Made by a program: the position numbers and the translations under genes. A stretch of 64,000 nucleotides of DNA from Oikopleura dioica (lineage: Eukaryota; Animalia; Chordata), in contig OU015568.1 in the NCBI GenBank assembly GCA_907165135.1, positions 6,696,001 to 6,760,000 of the forward strand, read 5' to 3'. This document shows, piece after piece, positions 19,067-30,507 of the stretch (the first letter of the stretch is position 1; the number at the start of each line of letters is the position of its first letter). The notes beneath the pieces are model-generated. The model saw nothing but the letters and a program-made list of their open reading frames with translations. It was not told where the DNA came from and made no database searches.

Positions 19067-22000
19067 TCATAAGGATTTGAGAAATCTGTTGATGCTCGTG
19101 ACGAGTCCATCTGAGCTTCGAACTCTTTTTGCTTTTCGACGATGTCTTCTTTCAACTCTCGATAGGTTCTTGCTTGGGGAGATTCTAAAAAATCCTCGTG
19201 ACCTTGAGTTCAGAAGCTTTTCTACAGTACCATAAGCTGATGAATGTACAGAAGGAAGAACAGACAGCTCTGTATCTTGTGTTACGTTGGACAAGAAATT
19301 CGCTCCAGATCGTCTCTTTGATACTCTTTGTTGATTGTTGCCAGAACTTAGTTTTTTCTTCGACTTCTTTTTCGTCGAGTTTGTTGCGTCCAGAACACAG
19401 TAATCTTTGAAGTCTGGATCTTGACAGTCGTCATCTTCCGGTTTCGGATCGTTATCGCTGTCGCCGTCGCTGTCAAGCAAAATCATCTGCTTCGTGTTTA
19501 ATTTGTTGTTCTTAAATAACTTGAAATGCTTAATAATTTTTGGTGCCTTACCTCTTTGATTTTCTTTTTATATTCTTGATTGTTTTTCGCATATTTTTGT
19601 TCATCGGCAATATTGATATACGCAATGTAATGGAAAAGTGTCGAGACTCGATGCCAAAGCATGCAGATTGTCTGGGTAAAGATGATGACGAGGTAAATGA
19701 AGAGAAAGAAAAGACTGAAAGGCTTGGAATGGATGAGCTAATTTCAAGTCACTTATAATAATTTTCAAGAAGAACGATTAACTGATCCTGAAGTCTGAAT
19801 ATATCAGGGTTCGGTATTTTGAATTCGTCGAAAAATTCGCCAATACACGCAGCGAATATGCTCTTTTCTTAAGCGAATGAGCGATTGTTCGCGAATCGCC
19901 TACTCGGGCGAATATTCGCTCGAAATTGAGCGTACAGCCCTGGATTGGCTGAACTCCAGGGCCGCGGGCGAGAAAAGGGTGGCGCCCGCGAGCTATAAGG
20001 TTATTTGGGCGGTGAAAATAAAATTATAGGCTGCGCAACGTCAAAGCCCGACCAGGGTTCAAATTCTGGGCAAAAAATTTTGTATTTGAGCGAGCGATGA
20101 GCGAGCGAGACTTGAGCGAGGGTTGAGCGAGCGAGTTGCTGAGCGAGTTTTTTCGAAAATCGGCTGAGCGAGCGGAGCGACTGAGCGAGCGAGATTTGAG
20201 CGACATCTGAGCGAGATTTGAGCGACTTTTGAGCGACTTTTGAGCGATATTTGAGCGGCGCTCGAGCGAAAAATGGAGCGATATTTAAAACTTTTAAGGC
20301 AGATTCAATAAGACAAAAATGATTCTTAATTTTGTATTTTATTCAAATTTAATATTATTTTCTCGGCAGTACTGAAGAATGGCAGTTTTCAGTTTTTGTG
20401 CATCCCTGAACTGACGTATAAATAAAATAGTCTCGTTTTTCAATCTGTTGCGGCATGGATCCATCGAGTCGCGAGTTGTTTGAGAAAACTCTCTTTCGAG
20501 ATCACAGGATGAGCCAGGGCAATTTATGCACTAAAATCACTACAGAACCGAACAATTATATAAGTGGAACCTGAAGAGCAGCTGCTGAAAGGCGGGGGAA
20601 TCTTGTGCTCATAGCCTTCCAGAAGGCAGTTAATTTTTTATGAATGAAGTGAGGTGAAGTCTCGACGATTCCACCAGTTATTTCTTCCCATTCTTCCGAT
20701 CCTATCTTGCCTTCATACTGCACATATTCTTCTTCCAGTGGGCTCAATCTGACAGTCAAGGATGCTGCGGACTTGACGATCTTGAAGTCATCGTTCGGAT
20801 TGAGCTGAGATGAACTTCCACTCCCTTCTGGCGTAGTTTGTTTCTCCTTGTCATCAACTTCCTTGAGCTCCTTATCCATATGCCAGATAAAATCTTAATG
20901 ATTGATAAGTACAAATTAAACGTCCAAAAATTAACCTTTTCCTTTCTTCATGAACTCGGCACTATTTTTTTCGACCAGTTTGATGTTTCTTGCAAAAATT
21001 GGAGCGTCCCCTTTAGCGAGTTCATTTCGGAGACGACGAAAGGAGCACGTGTACTTGCTTGGTGTTAAGTAAAGACAAGCAAGATTCAAATCCGTTGCCC
21101 TGGCTGGTTCTTTGCCATCGACAAATGATTCTTCGCTTTCGTAAAAACCGCCGAAAATCATTTTCATCAGTTTTATAAATAGCCCTTGGCGGAGCTTTGC
21201 ATGAAACTGCTTCTGTCGGATCGATGTAAGCCGCTTATCATTTTCCTTCGTGCAGTAAATCAGCATCTCTTCAAAGATAAGCAACTGGTCGCTTACCTTA
21301 ACACCTTTAGTATTTACCGTGGAAAATAAACAACCTTTGACTCAGAATGCTCGAGGATGCGCACATATTTCATCAAGTCGGAGGTCAGAAAAGAGAGGCT
21401 TTTAATGAAATCCAGATCAGGAAAGGAAACGCGCTGCGGAATAAGGTAGGCGTATGGATGATCTGATTTCGATAGATCTTCAAGCTTAGGTGACCAAGAA
21501 ACGAGCACCTTCAAATTTTCCTCCTTTTTGTTCCAGCGAATTCCGTTGTCACTCGTTATTAAGGGAAATCCTTGTATTTTTGCTGCTCTCTTCTTAATTT
21601 CATCGGCTGTCATTTCGCTGGTATCATGTCGAAGCTTGAAGATCCGTTCTTTTTCGTCTTCAGAGATATCTTCATGCGCGAAATATTGATTGACAGAGGA
21701 GAAATCAGTTGGCTCTAATTTGAGCTTCTTTTTCTCCTTGAAAAACAGCCCATTGCGACAATGCGATACAAAGCTCAAAAAGTCTTTGTGCAGATCGGAA
21801 TCGAGAGAGGCGTAGCTTTCGGCATTTTGAATCATTCCATCGAAAGCACGAATTCCCGAATGTGCACCGCAAATTGCTGCTTTGATAGATATGTACTCAG
21901 CAACTCCACGCTGCCCTCCATCGCAAATGACACCTAGCAGTCGTTGATAATCTTTGATTCCGTATTCCGCAAGGGCCTCTTCTACTTCCATCGCACAAGC

Positions 22001-25000
22001 TACATCTGTTTTATCGGTGATGGGAGCATACTGGAGAAGATAAGTAACTCTTTTATCAGTCGTAGAATCGTAGAAGACAAGTAATGTTCCCAATGCGGAA
22101 ACCTCAAGGTCTCCACTTGTCGTTCGCCCTGTATACTTCGTGTCGATTTCTAGCGAAATCGCACCTCGCTTCGCCAAGATAGGAAGAACTTTTTGGAGAA
22201 AATTAAGCATCTCCAGATGTGAGGTGAACAAAATTGTTCTTATTTTGTTGTAGGACACATCAAGCTGCTTCGAGTCATCAGGATTTCCTCCCCCGGCGAC
22301 AAAAGCATTTTGAATGATTGCTTCGAATTGTTCACTAAATATTGAATCACAATTTTACAAAAGAAATTTTGAAAACCTTTCAAGAAGACGGAAAGAAACA
22401 TGCTTATCGGAAACAAGCGACACTGCAGAGTCGCAAAATTTGGCGATCACTTTCTTTGATATCTTTCTTCGAGGTCGAAAATGTACTGCGGCCTGCTCGC
22501 GGTCCTCCTGCACTTTCGCCATCTCTCTTTCTTTCTCATTTGAATCATTGGTCAAAGGAGCATGATACCGTTTTGCATGTCGCCCCACTACACATAAAAG
22601 TAAATAGAACAAAACTGATTTAATTGTACCGTTTCCTGTTTTGATGCCAGTACTTTCAGATTCCTTGACAGAGAATGGCTCGTTATTGTTACGACATGGC
22701 CCAACGCAACGAAGATAATAGGTAAAATTATTCTCGGCGTCCATTTCTTTTTCGTACTCTTGCGGCGTAAAGGGAAATGTTTGAGTGAAACCTGTGAGCC
22801 ACCTTGAAAAAGTTTCATTCGTGGAAATGTCGAATTTGACATAACGAACGTCAAGTTTTCGTTTTTTAGCCCGACTCATTCTTTTTCAAAAATAGTTGAT
22901 AAAACGAAAAACTCCTTGAATTTTAGCTCATAAGATATTCTATTATCCTATATGTCAGTTTTCAATAATAAAGGCACTTGTGCACAGGGGCAGTTATTTT
23001 AAGGCAGTGCTTTCTTTTTTGCTGCTGGGCCGGTGGCGGGCAGTGCCGAGCGTTTCTTCTTGGACTCGGTTCGCTAGAAATTTTCAGGGTCAGATTTTAA
23101 TATTTGCAGATTTTTTTCGAAAATGGTTTTTTTAGGAAAACTTACAATGTCTAGTGTGTACTGGCTGCCGACAGCTGGAGTAGCGCGCTTCTCCAGGATC
23201 ATGTTTTTCCAATAGTCGATGCTTTGTTTTATGTCGGTCTTGAACTTTTTCTCCGTATCCCAGTTGAGTTGATGTTCCAAGCCGAAAGACGAGGCTTTTT
23301 TACTAATATACTCATTAGTTTTTCATAAAACGATTAACAACTTACTCGAAGACCTCCTTTGTGACGGGCGTATGCGATCGAAGCAGATTTTTGAAATGCT
23401 CGAGTTTTTGGGCATATGGTTTTTTCAAAAGGCGCGGGAAGTAAGTGAGAACCATTTCGCTTACTCCCAGTGGACTGTAAGTTGTCTTCATTTTTTTCCA
23501 TCCTTCAACTATCTTGCGACAGTTTGAGTCCTTTTTATTCTTTTCTTTCCAAATTTCCAGGTTCTCGAATGAAAGCCCAGACTCAGAACTCTTCTTCTTT
23601 GAATATTCATACATGATGAACTTTTCCCACGTGAATTCTCGGGAAGCGGGGTCAAGAGGCCGTACGTCTTTGTAAAAGACTAAAATGGGAATTGATAATC
23701 ATTTTGTATTTGAAGAATTTTCTTACCGACAGGCATTCCCCGCCCCATATTGATAATTTCATTTTTCTTTCCTCGTTCACGTTCTTTGAATGTAGCTTTT
23801 GTGCAGGGAACGATTGTCTCGATGGAGCTGGAACTAGCACTGCTAGAAGGCGCCGCATCGGATAGAGCTGCATCGGATGCTGCCTCATCGGCATCCTCGA
23901 TTTCGTCATGAAGGGGAAGACCCGAAGGATTTTTGTATGCTCGCATCTTGATAACCGCGAACATATTCTTCAGCTGCAATCGTCGGAACATGAGGAAATA
24001 CCGAGTCAGAGACTCAGTTTCGATCTTAATAATCGGTTAGCCAGAGTCGCCTATTACTGGACAGTTTATTATAAAAGCCGCTGAGCGGCTTTCTGCCCTT
24101 ATTGTACTGTCCCTAAAGCCGCAGTACAAGTAGTCTTAAAAGTCTCTTCGCGGCTTTTTACACAGTACTTGAAGCGCTAGAAGCCGCACTGCGGGTTATT
24201 CAGAATGATCAATTGACTTACTTGAGTTCCTGGATTTTGGATCATTTTTCGGATTAATTCATCCGCCTTGGCTCGGGATGGAGGATGTTGGAAGTACGGC
24301 TTCAGTTGAAGGAGCCAATCGAAGACGATGTCGATTTTAAAGTCGAAAAAACATCCGTCCGCGAATTCTCCTTCTTCGCCGTGCGCTTTTACGATTTTAT
24401 CGAAAACACTGATAAAATTTTAATGATTTTTTAAATTTTATTTACTAAACTATGGGTTTGACAAGGGGTTGAAATTAGGACTGACCAAAAATATTTTATA
24501 TTAACTCACTCAACGGATGTAGACGGCGGGGAAAACCCACGACCTAACACGCCATCACGGATATTGTGAGCTAACATAACTAATTTTTAGTCGAGTCGAA
24601 AATATAAAATGGGTTCGGGGTAGTGGGTTTAATGTTTAATTGTTTCTGACTCAATAGTTGTAGACGGCGGGACAAGCCCACGACCTAAGTAAGGTCACCT
24701 AACACGCCAACCGTATATTGTCGGAAACAAAAAAAAATTAAAATTTTATCAAAAATTAAACCTTCTGGGGATTCTGGAGGTCTTTTTGAGGGCCCCTGGC
24801 TCACCCTTGTCACTCATTCTGAAAATAATAAAGTGAATTTCTCTTTTAATAAATATTTGAACAGTTATTCATGTTTGGCAGAAATTTCTCTTGGAAATAA
24901 AGTCGAGACTGTGCGTGAGTCTTGATTTTCTCTTCAACTTGCAATAAGCCAATAAGCGTAGAGCTTTAAGAAACCGGCCAATCAAAGAGGGATATTCTAA

Positions 25001-28000
25001 ACTCACGCGATCGGTGGTGAAATTTCTCTTCTCAGGGCATTCGTCGCTGCGCTGACCAATAGGAGCGCAGAGTTTGCGCGTGAGTAATGGGCATTCTTAT
25101 TTTCGCTCGATCGCTCGAATCTCGCTCGAGCGTCGCTCAAATCTCGCTCAAACGTCGCTCAAACCTCGCTCAGTTGTCGCTCGAATCTCGCTCAAACGTC
25201 GCTCAGAAATGGTATGTTTTCAACTTGAGCGAGCGAGCGACTGAGCGACTCTCTAAAAAAAGCAGTTGAGTGAGCGGAGCGTGAGCGATCGCTCGCTCGC
25301 TCATCGCTCGCTCACGCTCCGATATCGCTCAGCGCTCAGCCAGAATTGGAACCCTGAGCCCGACCAATCAGAGCGCGCGGCAAAGCGAATATTTGAGAAA
25401 TTCGCTGAATTTCTGAAAAATTCTCCGAGAAAATTCGTTTTCATTCGTTTTGCATATTCGCTCATTAGAGAATATTCGTAAACGAATAAATAGAAATTCA
25501 AATGAAAAACGAATAATTTTGCGAATTCAAAATACCGAACCCTGGAATATATATTGTTCTTCATAACTGCAGCAAGGAAGACAATAGTCACGATCTTTTC
25601 GAGCATCATGAAAACCACCAAACTTTGGCAGTGGAATGCAGTCGTCGCAAATAGACTCATTTTCGCAAGGCTGGTTATCTTCATCTTCATCCTCGAATTT
25701 CATTCCACAAGTAGGAAACTGCTCGTGATTATTAATTGGAATATCAATATGTCCAAGCAAGTAAGAGTACTTCAAAATGGTGCAAGAGACAATTATCCAA
25801 AGAATATTGATGAATATAAAATACATGAACTTCTCATCCTTGAACTTTGTCATTTCCTCAGCCAATTTGTTTTCGTGCTTTTCGACTGTTTTGCTGTTTC
25901 TTCCCTTCTTTTTGATCCCAATGAAGCCATCAGTTGGGTCTTGCATTCGTTCCCAAAACTCTTGCTCAGGATTGCTCAATGTGTAAACCTTGCAATCTGA
26001 AAATAAACAATTTGCCTCTCTGTCTTTACATAAATTATCAGGTCAAATCTTACTTTTGTGAAACGGAGATCCATCACCAAGGACCCAACTAAGATATTTC
26101 GATTGAAATTTCTTATACAGTTTGATTTCCCTATCCCTGACGTCCTCCAGTTTCCAGTTTCTAAACTCTCCCTTCGGTTTCTTTTCTTTGCGATTCTCCT
26201 CTTTCACGCGAGGGTTGTTCATGAAGAGACACCAATGCCTTTCATCTTGGGATCTCAATGTTTTGATGGTGAATCCTCCATACAGCCGTTCTTGCGTTAT
26301 TGGTTCTAGGAAAACTTTATCGCTTGCTTCAGCAGCCGATGACTCATCCCCAACAGCTGTTTGATGCTGACTCTTTCGTCGTTCATTTTTGTTATTTGCG
26401 TACTTTATTTTTCCCTCAATCTTTGCTTTCATTATCCCCTGCTTTTCTAAATCTTCTTCTTTTTCAACGGGAAAAGTCTCTCTTTCTCGAGTTGGAACAA
26501 ACTCATAGTAAGTTTCTGGACGAGCTTTTCTTTTAAGTTTACCGCTATTTTGAATCTTTTTCTTCTTTTCTTTCGTTTTATCTTCATTTTTAGGCTCTTC
26601 AGTTTTTGCTTTATCCTTAGTATTCGCCTCATCCTTCTTCAACAGACTCTTATTCTCGCCTTCTTCTTTCGATCTTATATCATACGAGTCCATGCAAATC
26701 AAACAAGCACAGTTAGTTCCATCAAGACCTTCTTCCTCCTCTTTTCGAATTTGCTCCGGATTTTTCCCGGTAACCCGTTGCCAAAAGGTCTTTTCAACTT
26801 TCTTATCTGTGCTTGCTGCTTGCCTGGTTCCCCAAGAACAGTCATTCAAGTTCGCGATCGAGTAGATTTGCAGAAAGATGAAGCAAGAGGGAATGAAAAG
26901 GAAGTAAACCACCCCACAGAGAAGAGCATAAAAATCCCAGTGAAGAATCGCAGCGACTGATTCAGTTCAAAATTTCCATGAAAGCAACTTTTTTCTTTGA
27001 GAAACATTTTGAACTTTCCTATGTGTATTCCAGCCATCGCCACAAAAAACATGAAACTTGGGGAGAAAGGGCAAGTCATGCCCTCTATAAAAATTCCTAT
27101 GAACACAAGCGCCATCAGAAAAGAAAATGCAAGCGAGAACCAGGTGGCGAGCTGAATTTGAAAGTCTCCGTCGTTTGATAAATAACAAGCCATAGTAAAA
27201 ATTGCGACGGGAAAAATTACGATGAAATAGCAAACCCATCTAGGAATCGAGTTTCCTATAAGTATGATTATGTTTCTTCTTATTAAATAAGCCACTTACC
27301 AACTCCAAGAGAAAATGCTTCCGCTACCATCATCATTGTCGTCGAAACGCCTATAAGAGCAAATACCATGACGGTGAATTGGTACAAAATGTAGGGCACA
27401 GATATGTACGGGTTAGAGCTTCTAGCTAGTTTCTGTTGAGCAACGAGATTCCAGATGTTTGCTGTCGTTGATGGACCCCATCGCCGCCGCTGTTTGTAAA
27501 ATGTTGGAAGATCTTCTGGAGCAAAGGTATTACAGTGAGAAGATCCTTCGTACTCTATTCGTCCACCGGAAAAGAGCATCAAAGTACAGAGCCATCTATC
27601 TTCACCCTGATCATATTGAAGCTTTTCCATCGGATTCAGCGCGAGAGACTTGTACATCGCCATGACATTCGGTTCACTCAAATAACTCACTCTCATAAGC
27701 GAAAAACATCCTGGCGAGCAAAGAACACAACCCAACACATGTTCCGCTGCTTTTTGGAGCCAGTGACCCACCGCGTATTCAAAGTTCTGATAAGCCACCA
27801 GCCAACCTGATCCTTTAGGGTGAATCGCGCCACAACAAGCGGCAAGTTTATCGTTTCTCATGCAGCGATCAAGGACTAATTCGAATGCATCAGGTTCAAA
27901 ATCAACATCGCCGTCAAGAGCCAGCACGAAAGACTTTGATTTCTTTACTCTCATATTATCAGAATCTCGAAGCTCACAGGCATCAATCTTCCAGCCGATC

Positions 28001-30507
28001 AGGTAGTAGAGATACATCACTTGACTCCATCGTTTTCCACGTTGCACGAGTTCGGCGTCCTTCAGGTGAATGACGAAATCATAGCCGGCGATTTTATAAA
28101 CCACTCGACCGCCATAAGGAGTTCTGATGATTTTTCCTTCTTCGAGCGCTTTGGGTGTGATGTATTCGTTATCTTCGTACTTTGAAAGAACATCTTTGAA
28201 TACGGTTTGAAATTGAACTACCCATTCGTTCAGCTGCATCCATTCTTTCGCGTCAATAAAGTCGTCTGTTGGAAGTTTTTTCGGTTTACTTTTCTTTTTA
28301 TCTTCATTTTTATCACTTTTCTCGACTTCTTCTCGTTCTTGTTTATCCTTTTTGACTTCTTCTTTTTCTTTGTCCGTCGGTTTGTTGACGAAAACATTGT
28401 CAAAGAAAATGTGCATTTCGAGTTCATACTGATTTTCTTGAGAAGGATCATTTTTTTTCATCCGCGCGTGGCGGAGAAGTTTGACCACCGATCTCAAAAG
28501 AGTCGCCATTTCAAAATCTTCTTCGTGCCACAACGTTGTGCATATAAAGATGTAAGGATTCTTCTGCCCCTTTGACCACATGCCTGACTTGTTCGTTTTT
28601 CTTCCGGAAACCCGAGTTGTCTTTTTCGATCCAGAACTGAACTCTTTGTTGAAAGCGTCACTTTCTTGCTCTTCTATGATATCAATGGTTCTTCTGTTGA
28701 GAAGCGAAAATGTGGATGTTCCAACGGGGCGAAATGCAGGAAGCATAAACACGTGTCGATCAAGAGGGTAGATGAAATTTCTCGGCGTCCAAATATATTG
28801 AGTGAGGCAGAGTAGATGCAAGATCCCCAAGAGCCCGGTGACAAATGACATGATCAAGGAAGTCTCAATCGTTGATGATTCCCGAGTAGTATCAGAAAGT
28901 GATCGATTCTGATAACCAGGGACTTGTGGATAAACTTCCGTAAAAAGCAAATGATCATTCTCGTATTCCAGTTCCCCTTGAAAAATTTGCGATTCCATTC
29001 GAGTAGCATCTTGAAAAAATACCGCACAAAGCGCGATCAGGGGTCCTAAGGCTCCGGATACAGCTAGACCAGATTTTTGAAGGCCAAGTTTTACTGATAC
29101 TTTTTGCAGATATGATGTCATTACTGTGCTGATTGCATAAACGATCATCCAGAGCTGGAAGTTGTCCCCAGGGTGCTCATATGAGGGCCGATTATCGTGA
29201 GGAAGGAAGACGATGAGGGCGAGAATGATGCATTTCATCGGAGTTGCAAAGAGGTGCGAAATGATGATCGAAAGTTCTGGGTCTTCTTGCTTCTTATTTT
29301 CTGATTTCTTAGGGCTTCGATTTGCCCCTGAATCTGGAGATTTCTTTTTGATTCCTCGGCCAACAGAATGGATCGTTGCAATTACAGAATTACTCGGGCA
29401 AATTGAAAAGTTGATATAGTTTGGAACGGACATCATATTCACGCAAAGAATTACGAACAAGCTCTTCACGATGTCGTCCGTGTCGAAAAACATCATCACA
29501 TGTCCAATCGTAAAGAAAATCCATTGGCCGTAAGGGGCGAATTTTTTCAAAACAGAAAGGATTGGTTCACAACATTTTTTCAGAACCCCTTTTTTCTCCT
29601 CGATTTGAACTTGTTGATTACCAGCGTTAGCTTCTTCCGCCGCTTGTTTAGCTTCTTCAACTGTTTTATCTTGAAATAAAGAGAACACTAAGGGCACGGC
29701 TGTGGGAAACATTAAGACCGCCACGTTCATCGTCCTTAATTCATCGTCAAACAGATAGCTCTAGCGCTTTTCTGACCTTGATATATCCGGTGCAAGATAA
29801 AACACATAAAACCCCACTCCAACGGCGTATATCATTTCGGTGACACAAGTTACTAGGATCTGTAGGAATTTGGGGAATGGCGGTCTTTTGAAGATCGCAA
29901 AGTAGAGGCAATATAAAAATGTGTAGAATTCTGGGATGAGGAGTACCGCGAACAAGATTTTGAACTCTGAACATAAGTGTCATCAAATCAATTCAATAAA
30001 TTCATAAAATATACGAGAGATTAAAGTACCTGTAAAATCTTCTGCGTTTCTTGAGCTTCTATATTCCATTTGATAACCGCCAAGTATTCGAGAGCGAGTC
30101 TCACTACCGCCAGGTGTTGTATCTTCACTTATGCTCGCTATATGGAACTCATTATTCATCTCAGCAAAAGAAAAGTACTGAAGCGCATTCGATACGACGC
30201 ACAAAACCCCAATTAGAATATTGAAAGTGTGCCATAAAATGATCCTATTTCGATGCGATTTCGACGACGGAAGAGCGAATTCTGTTATATTTGGTTCTGT
30301 TTTTGCAATGTTCCATGGCTCGGTCTTCTCGTCATCTGCCTTTTTTGCCTGCTGCTCAGTTGAATCTTCGGGAGCTTCTACGACTTGTGGATCAGAAAAT
30401 CCGGCATTTGAAGGATGGGAAATTTTATCAGCAGCGCTTTCTGTTGTCGCACTTGTTGGAGGAGATTCTCCTTCAAACTGTACTTTAGTTTTTCTTGACA
30501 TTCTCAT
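19067..30507 (-). CDS. CHS: Chitin synthase (metazoan type), with a late coding exon interrupted by nested transposons at 19805-25544
   Basis: CTTLWHE, DGD, QNFEYAVGHWLQKAAEHVLGCVLCSPGCFSL, GEDRWL and QRRRW motifs in 27283-29730. The conserved C-terminal TM motif (TQTICMLWHRVSTLFHYIA) lies on the far side of the insertion at ~19600-19740. More 5' exons may extend to ~31160. Confidence 0.95.
20339..22879 (-). CDS. hAT transposase, 5 exons, ~790 aa
   Basis: BED-like C..C...RHAKRYH; SFRLLESEQF; DDE residues in SLEID, VICDGG and PGSSCDLEREFS; CGAH (CxxH); IRWN; FWKAMSTRFPRLS dimerisation motif. Four GT-AG introns keep the frame open. Confidence 0.92.
22999..23991 (-). CDS. Second gene inside the hAT element (4 exons, ~280 aa, function unknown)
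   Basis: In-frame GTAAG..AG introns at ~23727, ~23345 and ~23140. Acidic, Ala/Ser-rich N-terminus; ends ESKKKRSALPATGPAAKKKALP* (NLS-like). Confidence 0.75.
24518..24721. repeat. Imperfect ~50-60 bp direct repeat inside the hAT 5' region
   Basis: TGTAGACGGCGGG..AA.CCCACGACCTAA...CACGCCA..ATATTGT at 24518-24567 and 24659-24721. Confidence 0.7.

Follow-up and report, generated by a model that had tools for sequence, protein, structure and literature searches.

Organisation of the locus

The stretch of DNA analysed here, referred to as the window, comprises 64,000 nucleotides of contig OU015568.1 (assembly GCA_907165135.1, positions 6,696,001 to 6,760,000) of the larvacean Oikopleura dioica. 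It contains a chitin synthase gene, one exon of which is split by two transposable elements lying one inside the other: a short element that by its sequence belongs to the miniature inverted-repeat transposable elements (MITEs) is inserted in the exon, and a complete transposon of the hAT superfamily is inserted in the MITE. The transposase of the inner element is 100% identical to CAG5082993.1, which is named Oidioi.mRNA.OKI2018_I69.PAR.g10252.t1, and for this reason the window is assigned to the Okinawan reference genome of the species (PMC8008620) and, within it, to the pseudo-autosomal scaffold. The scanned assembly is this reference genome (64.28 Mb in 19 pieces), to which all copy numbers within the genome refer. 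The nest consists of the following parts, read directly from the window:

19797-19804, left copy of the outer 8-bp target-site duplication, GAATATAT
19805-25544, outer element (MITE including the inner hAT), a composite of 5740 bp
19805-20052, + strand, MITE left arm, comprising the 23-nt inverted end at 19805-19827, subterminal motifs of the GCGAAT type and, at 20045-20052, the target AGCCCGAC of the hAT insertion
20053-25356, - strand, inner hAT element, 5304 bp
25357-25364, second copy of the inner duplication, in front of the MITE right arm
25365-25544, + strand, MITE right arm with its 23-nt inverted end (25522-25544)
25545-25552, right copy of the outer 8-bp target-site duplication, GAATATAT

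A preliminary description made from the letters of the window had reported two pairs of terminal inverted repeats, each framed by its own perfect 8-bp duplication, and both pairs were recovered at precisely the positions given there. The outer inverted ends (CAGGGTTCGGTATTTTGAATTCG, at 19805-19827 and 25522-25544) match in all 23 bases and the inner ones (20053-20069 and 25340-25356) in 16 of 17, while the inner duplication AGCCCGAC is perfect at 20045-20052 and 25357-25364. The first eight bases of the ends, CAGGGTTC, are common to both layers, whereas the subterminal motifs differ, with GCGAAT in the MITE and GAGCGA in the hAT element. For each duplication pair the probability of a chance match over 8 bp is 4^-8. 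Stronger evidence for the nest than this probability alone is provided by family membership: removal of the inner element together with one copy of its duplication yields a 428-bp element which is 93-99.8% identical to 11 other, uninterrupted copies in the genome. The ends, the duplications, the rebuilt MITE and the intact site in related larvaceans (see below) all agree with the three-level nesting of hAT in MITE in chitin synthase exon that had been proposed, and we regard the nested structure itself as practically certain.

The outer element

Perfect 8-bp duplications were found at 10 of the 11 uninterrupted MITE copies. The 23-nt end occurs in exactly 13 pairs in the genome, whereas a reversed control pattern gave none; all 13 pairs belong to MITEs, so no larger or autonomous partner with these ends was found in the genome. 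The copy in the window differs from the family consensus at two of 428 positions (0.5%) and most copies show three differences or fewer, which points to a recent spread of the family. The element is short (428 bp), has no apparent coding capacity, carries inverted ends and a target duplication and is a member of a homogeneous multi-copy family; by sequence it is thus classified as a non-autonomous hAT-type element, i.e. a MITE. The number of 13 copies is low for a MITE family.

A repeat shared beneath the copies was not detected, and the flanks of the copies are mutually unrelated. Long open frames contain 3 of the 11 copies, compared with 57% of random positions, and this shortage fits selection against exonic copies. 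Clear coding frames were seen around two of the 13. A second MITE copy (L003:1313-1740; G000:C2:10718405-10718832) interrupts an open frame of 673 codons in a gene with multiple CUB domains, with Pfam CUB matches of E 3e-105 upstream and 4e-47 downstream of the insertion. Its orientation, codon phase and read-through peptide (QGSVF followed by a stop) are the same as in the chitin synthase gene.

Nests were found in two of the 13 copies. The MITE copy at L017:155-2409 (G000:C1:7672754-7675008) harbours a non-coding element of 1824 bp with perfect inverted ends of 58 nt and a TA duplication, which from these features looks Tc1/mariner-like. At another copy (L008, 1501-1929) the flanks are 80% inverted-complementary over 77 nt, and this copy may itself lie inside another inverted-end element. 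The suggestion that the MITE served as a safe landing site is weakly supported by the two copies with a nested element.

The inner element and its transposase

The hAT element in the window is the sole full-length copy in the genome (5304 bp). Its internal features are:

20087-20269, left subterminal array, in which GAGCGA motifs recur at a period of 11 nt (repeat families D1, D2 and I1-I25)
20339-22879, - strand, hAT transposase gene, an annotated six-exon model matching CAG5082993.1 (733 aa)
22744-22631, 22588-22379, 22336-21332, 21293-20937, 20894-20571 and 20530-20342, - strand, transposase exons from the mapping of protein P0003
23074-24420, - strand, a second, apparently spliced group of open frames, located on the transposase strand and upstream of that gene
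24490-24688, internal direct repeat with 141-nt spacing (repeat family D3), common to non-autonomous hAT relatives
25111-25314, right subterminal array, made up of TCGCTC motifs and inverted relative to its partner at 20087-20269

The introns of the transposase gene measure about 40 nt and the stop codon at 20339-20341 is directly followed by AATAAA; at the other end the open frame permits an earlier start at 22879. Domain, structure and homolog searches were carried out with the database protein P0003 (733 aa, CAG5082993.1) instead of the joined exon model from the window. Pfam analysis of this protein detected the hAT dimerisation domain PF05699 at the C-terminus (score 32.1 bits, cut-off 21.4 bits, E 9.8e-8). 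When the exons were searched singly, no Pfam family exceeded its cut-off, the two exons that share PF05699 each remaining below it. In an alignment of P0003 with nine relatives (A1), residues D173 and D247 as well as C264 and H267 of the CxxH motif are invariant, and E682 aligns with the glutamate of the SERTFS motif of Hermes.

The AlphaFold model of the transposase reached a mean predicted local distance difference test (pLDDT) score of 80. The 12 best matches of this model in Foldseek were all Hermes structures, with E-values from 1e-10 to 7e-8 and template modelling (TM) scores of 0.55-0.67 by target, and the next match followed at E 0.02. Searches of solved structures by sequence were less productive: the profile of the transposase family gave no match and the single sequence gave weak matches to Hermes only (E 0.025). 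All sequence-level features of the hAT superfamily were found save a recognisable BED-finger profile; residues 13-47 of P0003 show a Cx3C...Hx4H pattern, a candidate for a BED-type zinc finger, in a region without a Pfam match. The family is sparse, with 20 proteins at an E-value of 0.001 among 1.84 billion representatives.

Judged by sequence and structural model, a hAT transposon with an intact transposase of predicted Hermes-like fold makes up the inner layer of the nest. The proposed autonomy of the element is plausible in view of the PF05699 domain, the catalytic residues and the predicted fold, and indirect signs of it are the intact open frame and the non-autonomous relatives with similar ends. 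Eight shorter relatives of 487-3155 bp have ends that are 82-90% identical to those of the element in the window, and a sister element of 5633 bp is located on another scaffold (L026:289-5921; G000:C2:12670088-12675720), its transposase being 63% identical. All nine of these family members are flanked by perfect 8-bp duplications. The hAT element in the window is the likely driver of the non-autonomous relatives of 0.5-3.2 kb.

The interrupted chitin synthase gene

The chitin synthase gene is transcribed from the - strand, and its parts are given here in the direction of transcription:

27283-29730, - strand, large exon for the catalytic domain with the QRRRW motif (PF03142)
25553-25996, - strand, exon upstream of the insertion, encoding the next-to-last membrane helix and a cysteine-rich loop
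19783-19796, - strand, last 14 nt of the split exon (RLQD and two bases), now severed
19715-19782, - strand, conserved GT-AG intron of 68 nt, with the same splice sites in contigs L015 and L016
19552-19714, - strand, exon of 54 codons for the last membrane helix and the adjoining segment, kept in relatives and at least four paralogs
19067-19510, - strand, C-terminal tail exon up to the stop codon, about 147 aa if no further intron is present

The host was identified by PF03142 (Chitin_synth_2) with 93 bits against a cut-off of 27 (E 2.2e-26), and the motifs QRRRW, EDR and SWGTR can be read in its open frames. When proteins of up to 1426 aa were searched with the host exon of 815 aa, the matches were three exon fragments from metagenomes. 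The intact state of the insertion site can be seen in L015 and L016, two contigs of related larvaceans from marine metagenomes, with 63-78% protein identity. Here the orthologous exon is uninterrupted and reads ...EEKFVY RLQDQ... exactly where the window reads ...EEQYIF, the insertion and RLQD. The small intron follows in these contigs as in the window, with the splice sites CA/GT ... CCTTTCAG/T (a slash marks the exon border), and L015 also contains the next two exons in the same order.

Because the relatives show the same intron and the same exon order, the exons at 19067-19796 are assigned to the split chitin synthase gene; that they might belong to a different transcript had been named in advance as an objection to the nest, and the order downstream of the site in L015 speaks against it. 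Of the peptide that had been restored by removing both insertions, the reading ...EEQYIF RLQD H LFFLFIYLV... is retained, whereas the eight residues SSIPSLSV turned out to be the 68-nt intron read in another frame. By sequence comparison, the exon of the last helix is conserved both in larvacean relatives and in paralogs within the genome, at least four of which contain it in recognisable form. The genome contains about ten chitin synthase loci (e.g. C1:4516484-4521863 and C4:13086329-13089311 of G000), and in the catalytic exon the identity to the nearest paralog amounts to 78-89%.

Consequences for the gene

Without splicing, the frame of the upstream exon was predicted to end five codons inside the inverted repeat, and indeed ...EEQYIF is followed by QGSVF and a stop codon in the inverted end. 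Downstream of the insertion lie four codons and a split codon, the 54-codon helix exon and the tail of about 147 codons, which together amount to about 206 residues. We propose that the 428-bp MITE inserted into the exon for the loop before the last membrane helix, with formation of the outer 8-bp duplication, and that the 5304-bp hAT element would then have integrated into the MITE, forming a duplication of its own. Host transcripts would continue into the MITE, where the frame would reach a stop after five codons, or they may end at signals of the transposon genes, which share the strand of the host gene and include the AATAAA behind the transposase stop codon. In either case the C-terminal residues including the conserved last membrane helix would be lost, and because of this loss the allele would be null or weakened; with about ten chitin synthase loci in the genome, such an allele might be tolerated. 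The reading that we consider probable on balance is a truncating allele of recent origin, with redundancy of paralogs as the reason for its tolerance.

Several observations weigh against it. The exons downstream of the insertion are intact and conserved, which fits continued use or merely a young insertion. The sequenced animal showed no empty allele, so that a homozygous carrier appears to be viable; a harmless, spliced insert would fit this as well. A second copy of the same MITE is present in the coding exon of the multi-CUB gene, and in-frame splice routes through the insertion exist on paper, one of the GT-AG and two of the GG-AG type. Raw reads of the oligo-dT RNA run X11 gave no hit on the window and are no test either way.

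The alternative suggested by these points is a nascent intron: the MITE with its hAT passenger would be spliced out, with a donor in the inverted end and a host acceptor, and the gene would remain functional with a scar of zero to four residues. The splice routes were enumerated by hand, and direct reading gave three that keep the frame. The GT-AG route leads from TCG/GTATTT, 9 nt into the inverted end, to ACTTCAG/G, 7 nt past the duplication, and replaces RLQ by QGS. GG donors in the inverted end are CAG/GG and CA/GG. In the first GG-AG route RL is deleted and the frame is kept, and in the second, in which the donor CA/GG is joined to the native acceptor CCTTTCAG/T, RLQD is deleted, again with the frame kept. 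Chance alone, however, should place some AG in frame within 100 nt, and many such routes exist at the CUB site too.

About 11% of the introns in the Okinawan Oikopleura dioica assembly are non-GT/AG and would leave room for such sites, but the median intron length there is 49 bp (PMC8008620), compared with which an intron of about 5.7 kb would be exceptional. It would moreover contain two genes on the same strand with splice sites of their own, in addition to the AATAAA after the transposase stop codon. MITE-derived introns have been described in the related larvacean Fritillaria borealis (PMC11282704), and both the MITE copy in the CUB-gene exon, with the same orientation and phase, and the failure to see an empty allele in the carrier animal speak in the same direction. 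Against this stands the rarity of MITE copies in long open frames relative to random positions (3 of 11 versus 57%). Many family copies serving as introns, as in introner families, were not found, with two of the 13 copies in clear coding frames. We favour truncation because a two-gene intron of 5.7 kb would be exceptional and exonic MITE copies are rarer than random; a nascent intron is the less favoured reading and appears unlikely. Slightly more doubtful still is the full version of it, a brand-new intron in the chitin synthase pre-mRNA which carries a live autonomous hAT element and takes its donor from the inverted end and its acceptor from the host. If true, a chordate would here be caught in the course of gaining an intron, one that already harbours an active transposon.

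Order of the insertions and support by sequencing reads

Insertion of the MITE followed by that of the hAT element is the simpler order. The order is not fixed by structure alone, and the hAT element might have entered the MITE elsewhere, after which the 5740-bp composite would have moved into the exon by means of the MITE ends; a MITE-only allele would then never have existed at this locus. The composite does possess perfect 23-nt MITE ends and a perfect outer duplication, and no MITE-only allele could be shown at the locus. On the other hand, all 13 end pairs in the genome are MITEs, so that an autonomous partner is missing there, and two single steps are the simpler path. A composite of 5.7 kb would presumably also be mobilised less efficiently than a 428-bp element. 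Taken together, we attach a low probability to the reverse order.

The correctness of the assembly was examined with run X1, which matches the window best among the DNA runs and is likely the source sample. A short-read contig of 3734 nt comprises left-flank sequence and the adjoining 28 nt of the MITE, a contig of 5739 nt leads from the MITE into the right flank, and a third one of 4991 nt covers 20163-25153 with no differences. The depths of these contigs are alike (226, 319 and 250). Since independent short-read contigs cross both outer junctions, these are no product of misassembly, which had been named as the other possible objection to the nest. An artefact in which repeats were wrongly joined in the long-read assembly can draw on the inner junctions, which are not spanned by short-read contigs as the flanking arms are repeats, and on the haplotype-merged nature of the assembly (PMC8008620), but it is extremely improbable, given the bridged outer junctions and the fact that the two MITE arms, put together, give a complete copy of the family whose break carries a perfect 8-bp duplication, which a wrong join would not yield.

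In run X1 no contig joins the two flanks, and a rare or divergent second allele is compatible with the contigs. The empty-site joint (5748 nt) was not found in X1, X5 and X6, where the flanks were compared over 147 and 93 nt only and X6 has no cover of the right flank. A joint of 5312 nt does occur in the reads; it derives from other MITE copies and is uninformative for the chitin synthase locus. An exact search of metagenome contigs for the restored junction gave no match, and the assembly contains no alternative haplotig of the locus.

In the runs X5 and X6, which represent other samples, the hAT element is about 99.3-99.6% identical over 20163-25153, while the host flanks share few 31-letter words with the window. 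By these comparisons the hAT element would be either younger than the divergence of the host alleles or recently spread between populations. The claim that both insertions are recent is in line with this identity, with the perfect state of both duplications and with the 0.5% distance of the MITE copy from its consensus. As a hint, a 272-nt contig of X6 leaves the left end of the hAT element into sequence unlike the MITE of the window, which suggests the element at another insertion site. Likewise only a hint is a right-flank contig of X5 that stops, in the manner of a branch point, at the border of duplication and MITE.

Comparison with known systems

With Hermes, Ac and hobo the hAT element of the window shares the 8-bp target duplication, short inverted ends beginning with CAGGG and short subterminal repeats. 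The ends of Ac likewise begin with CAGGG. Also shared are the C-terminal dimerisation domain and an RNase-H-like core with D, D, CxxH and E, the fold being a predicted one in our case. However, the transposase is very divergent, with 12-14% identity to Hermes, and the C-terminal domain is the only one detected by Pfam. The element further differs from these three by its six-exon gene, the extra upstream frames and the small number of relatives, just 20 among 1.84 billion representative proteins.

Nested transposons are familiar from maize and other genomes, where their relative order can be read from the target duplications of each element. The window likewise shows one element inside another, each with its own target duplication; in contrast to maize-type nests, its host is a coding exon, in an animal genome that at 64 Mb is compact, and both layers are of the hAT type with ends that share CAGGGTTC. 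Nested transposons and gene-breaking insertions are each well known, and the distinctive feature here is an intact hAT element of autonomous size inside an exonic MITE.

The introns of Fritillaria borealis that derive from introners or MITEs are described (Henriet et al. 2019, summarised in PMC11282704) as non-canonical and mostly AG-AC or AG-AT. The window agrees with them in the small element with inverted ends and a target duplication in larvacean coding sequence, and in possible splice signals in or near the element ends. In contrast to them, the MITE family of the window has 13 copies and not thousands, most of its copies lie outside open frames, and no AG-AC or AG-AT sites are present at frame-keeping positions in the window.

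A transposon that breaks one gene of a ten-gene family is ordinary by itself, and the case would become much more interesting if splicing were shown. As judged by the intact copy, the sister element and the shorter relatives, a genome that ranks among the most compact of any animal harbours a hAT family which is very divergent and apparently active, and also a separate young MITE family that hits coding exons. The locus can be genotyped by PCR (polymerase chain reaction), where an empty allele, one with the MITE alone and one with both MITE and hAT are the three states to be expected. Such genotyping would measure transposition, the cost of exonic insertions and any rescue by splicing through larvacean spliceosomes. 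Rescue by splicing in Oikopleura would also bear on how Fritillaria acquired its MITE-derived introns.

Additional features of the hAT element

The open frames at 23074-24420, upstream of the transposase, matched no Pfam family, and neither a paralog in the genome nor a convincing neighbour in the Atlas nor a counterpart in the sister element was found for them. They may represent a second gene, captured DNA or noise. The internal repeat at 24490-24688 was considered as a derivative of a tRNA or a short interspersed nuclear element (SINE), and this candidate was rejected as no tRNA was found in it. The repeat recurs with 76-87% identity in seven non-autonomous hAT relatives, and its read depth exceeds that of the rest of the element. 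The two subterminal arrays, with their inverted GAGCGA and TCGCTC motifs, are likely binding repeats of the transposase.

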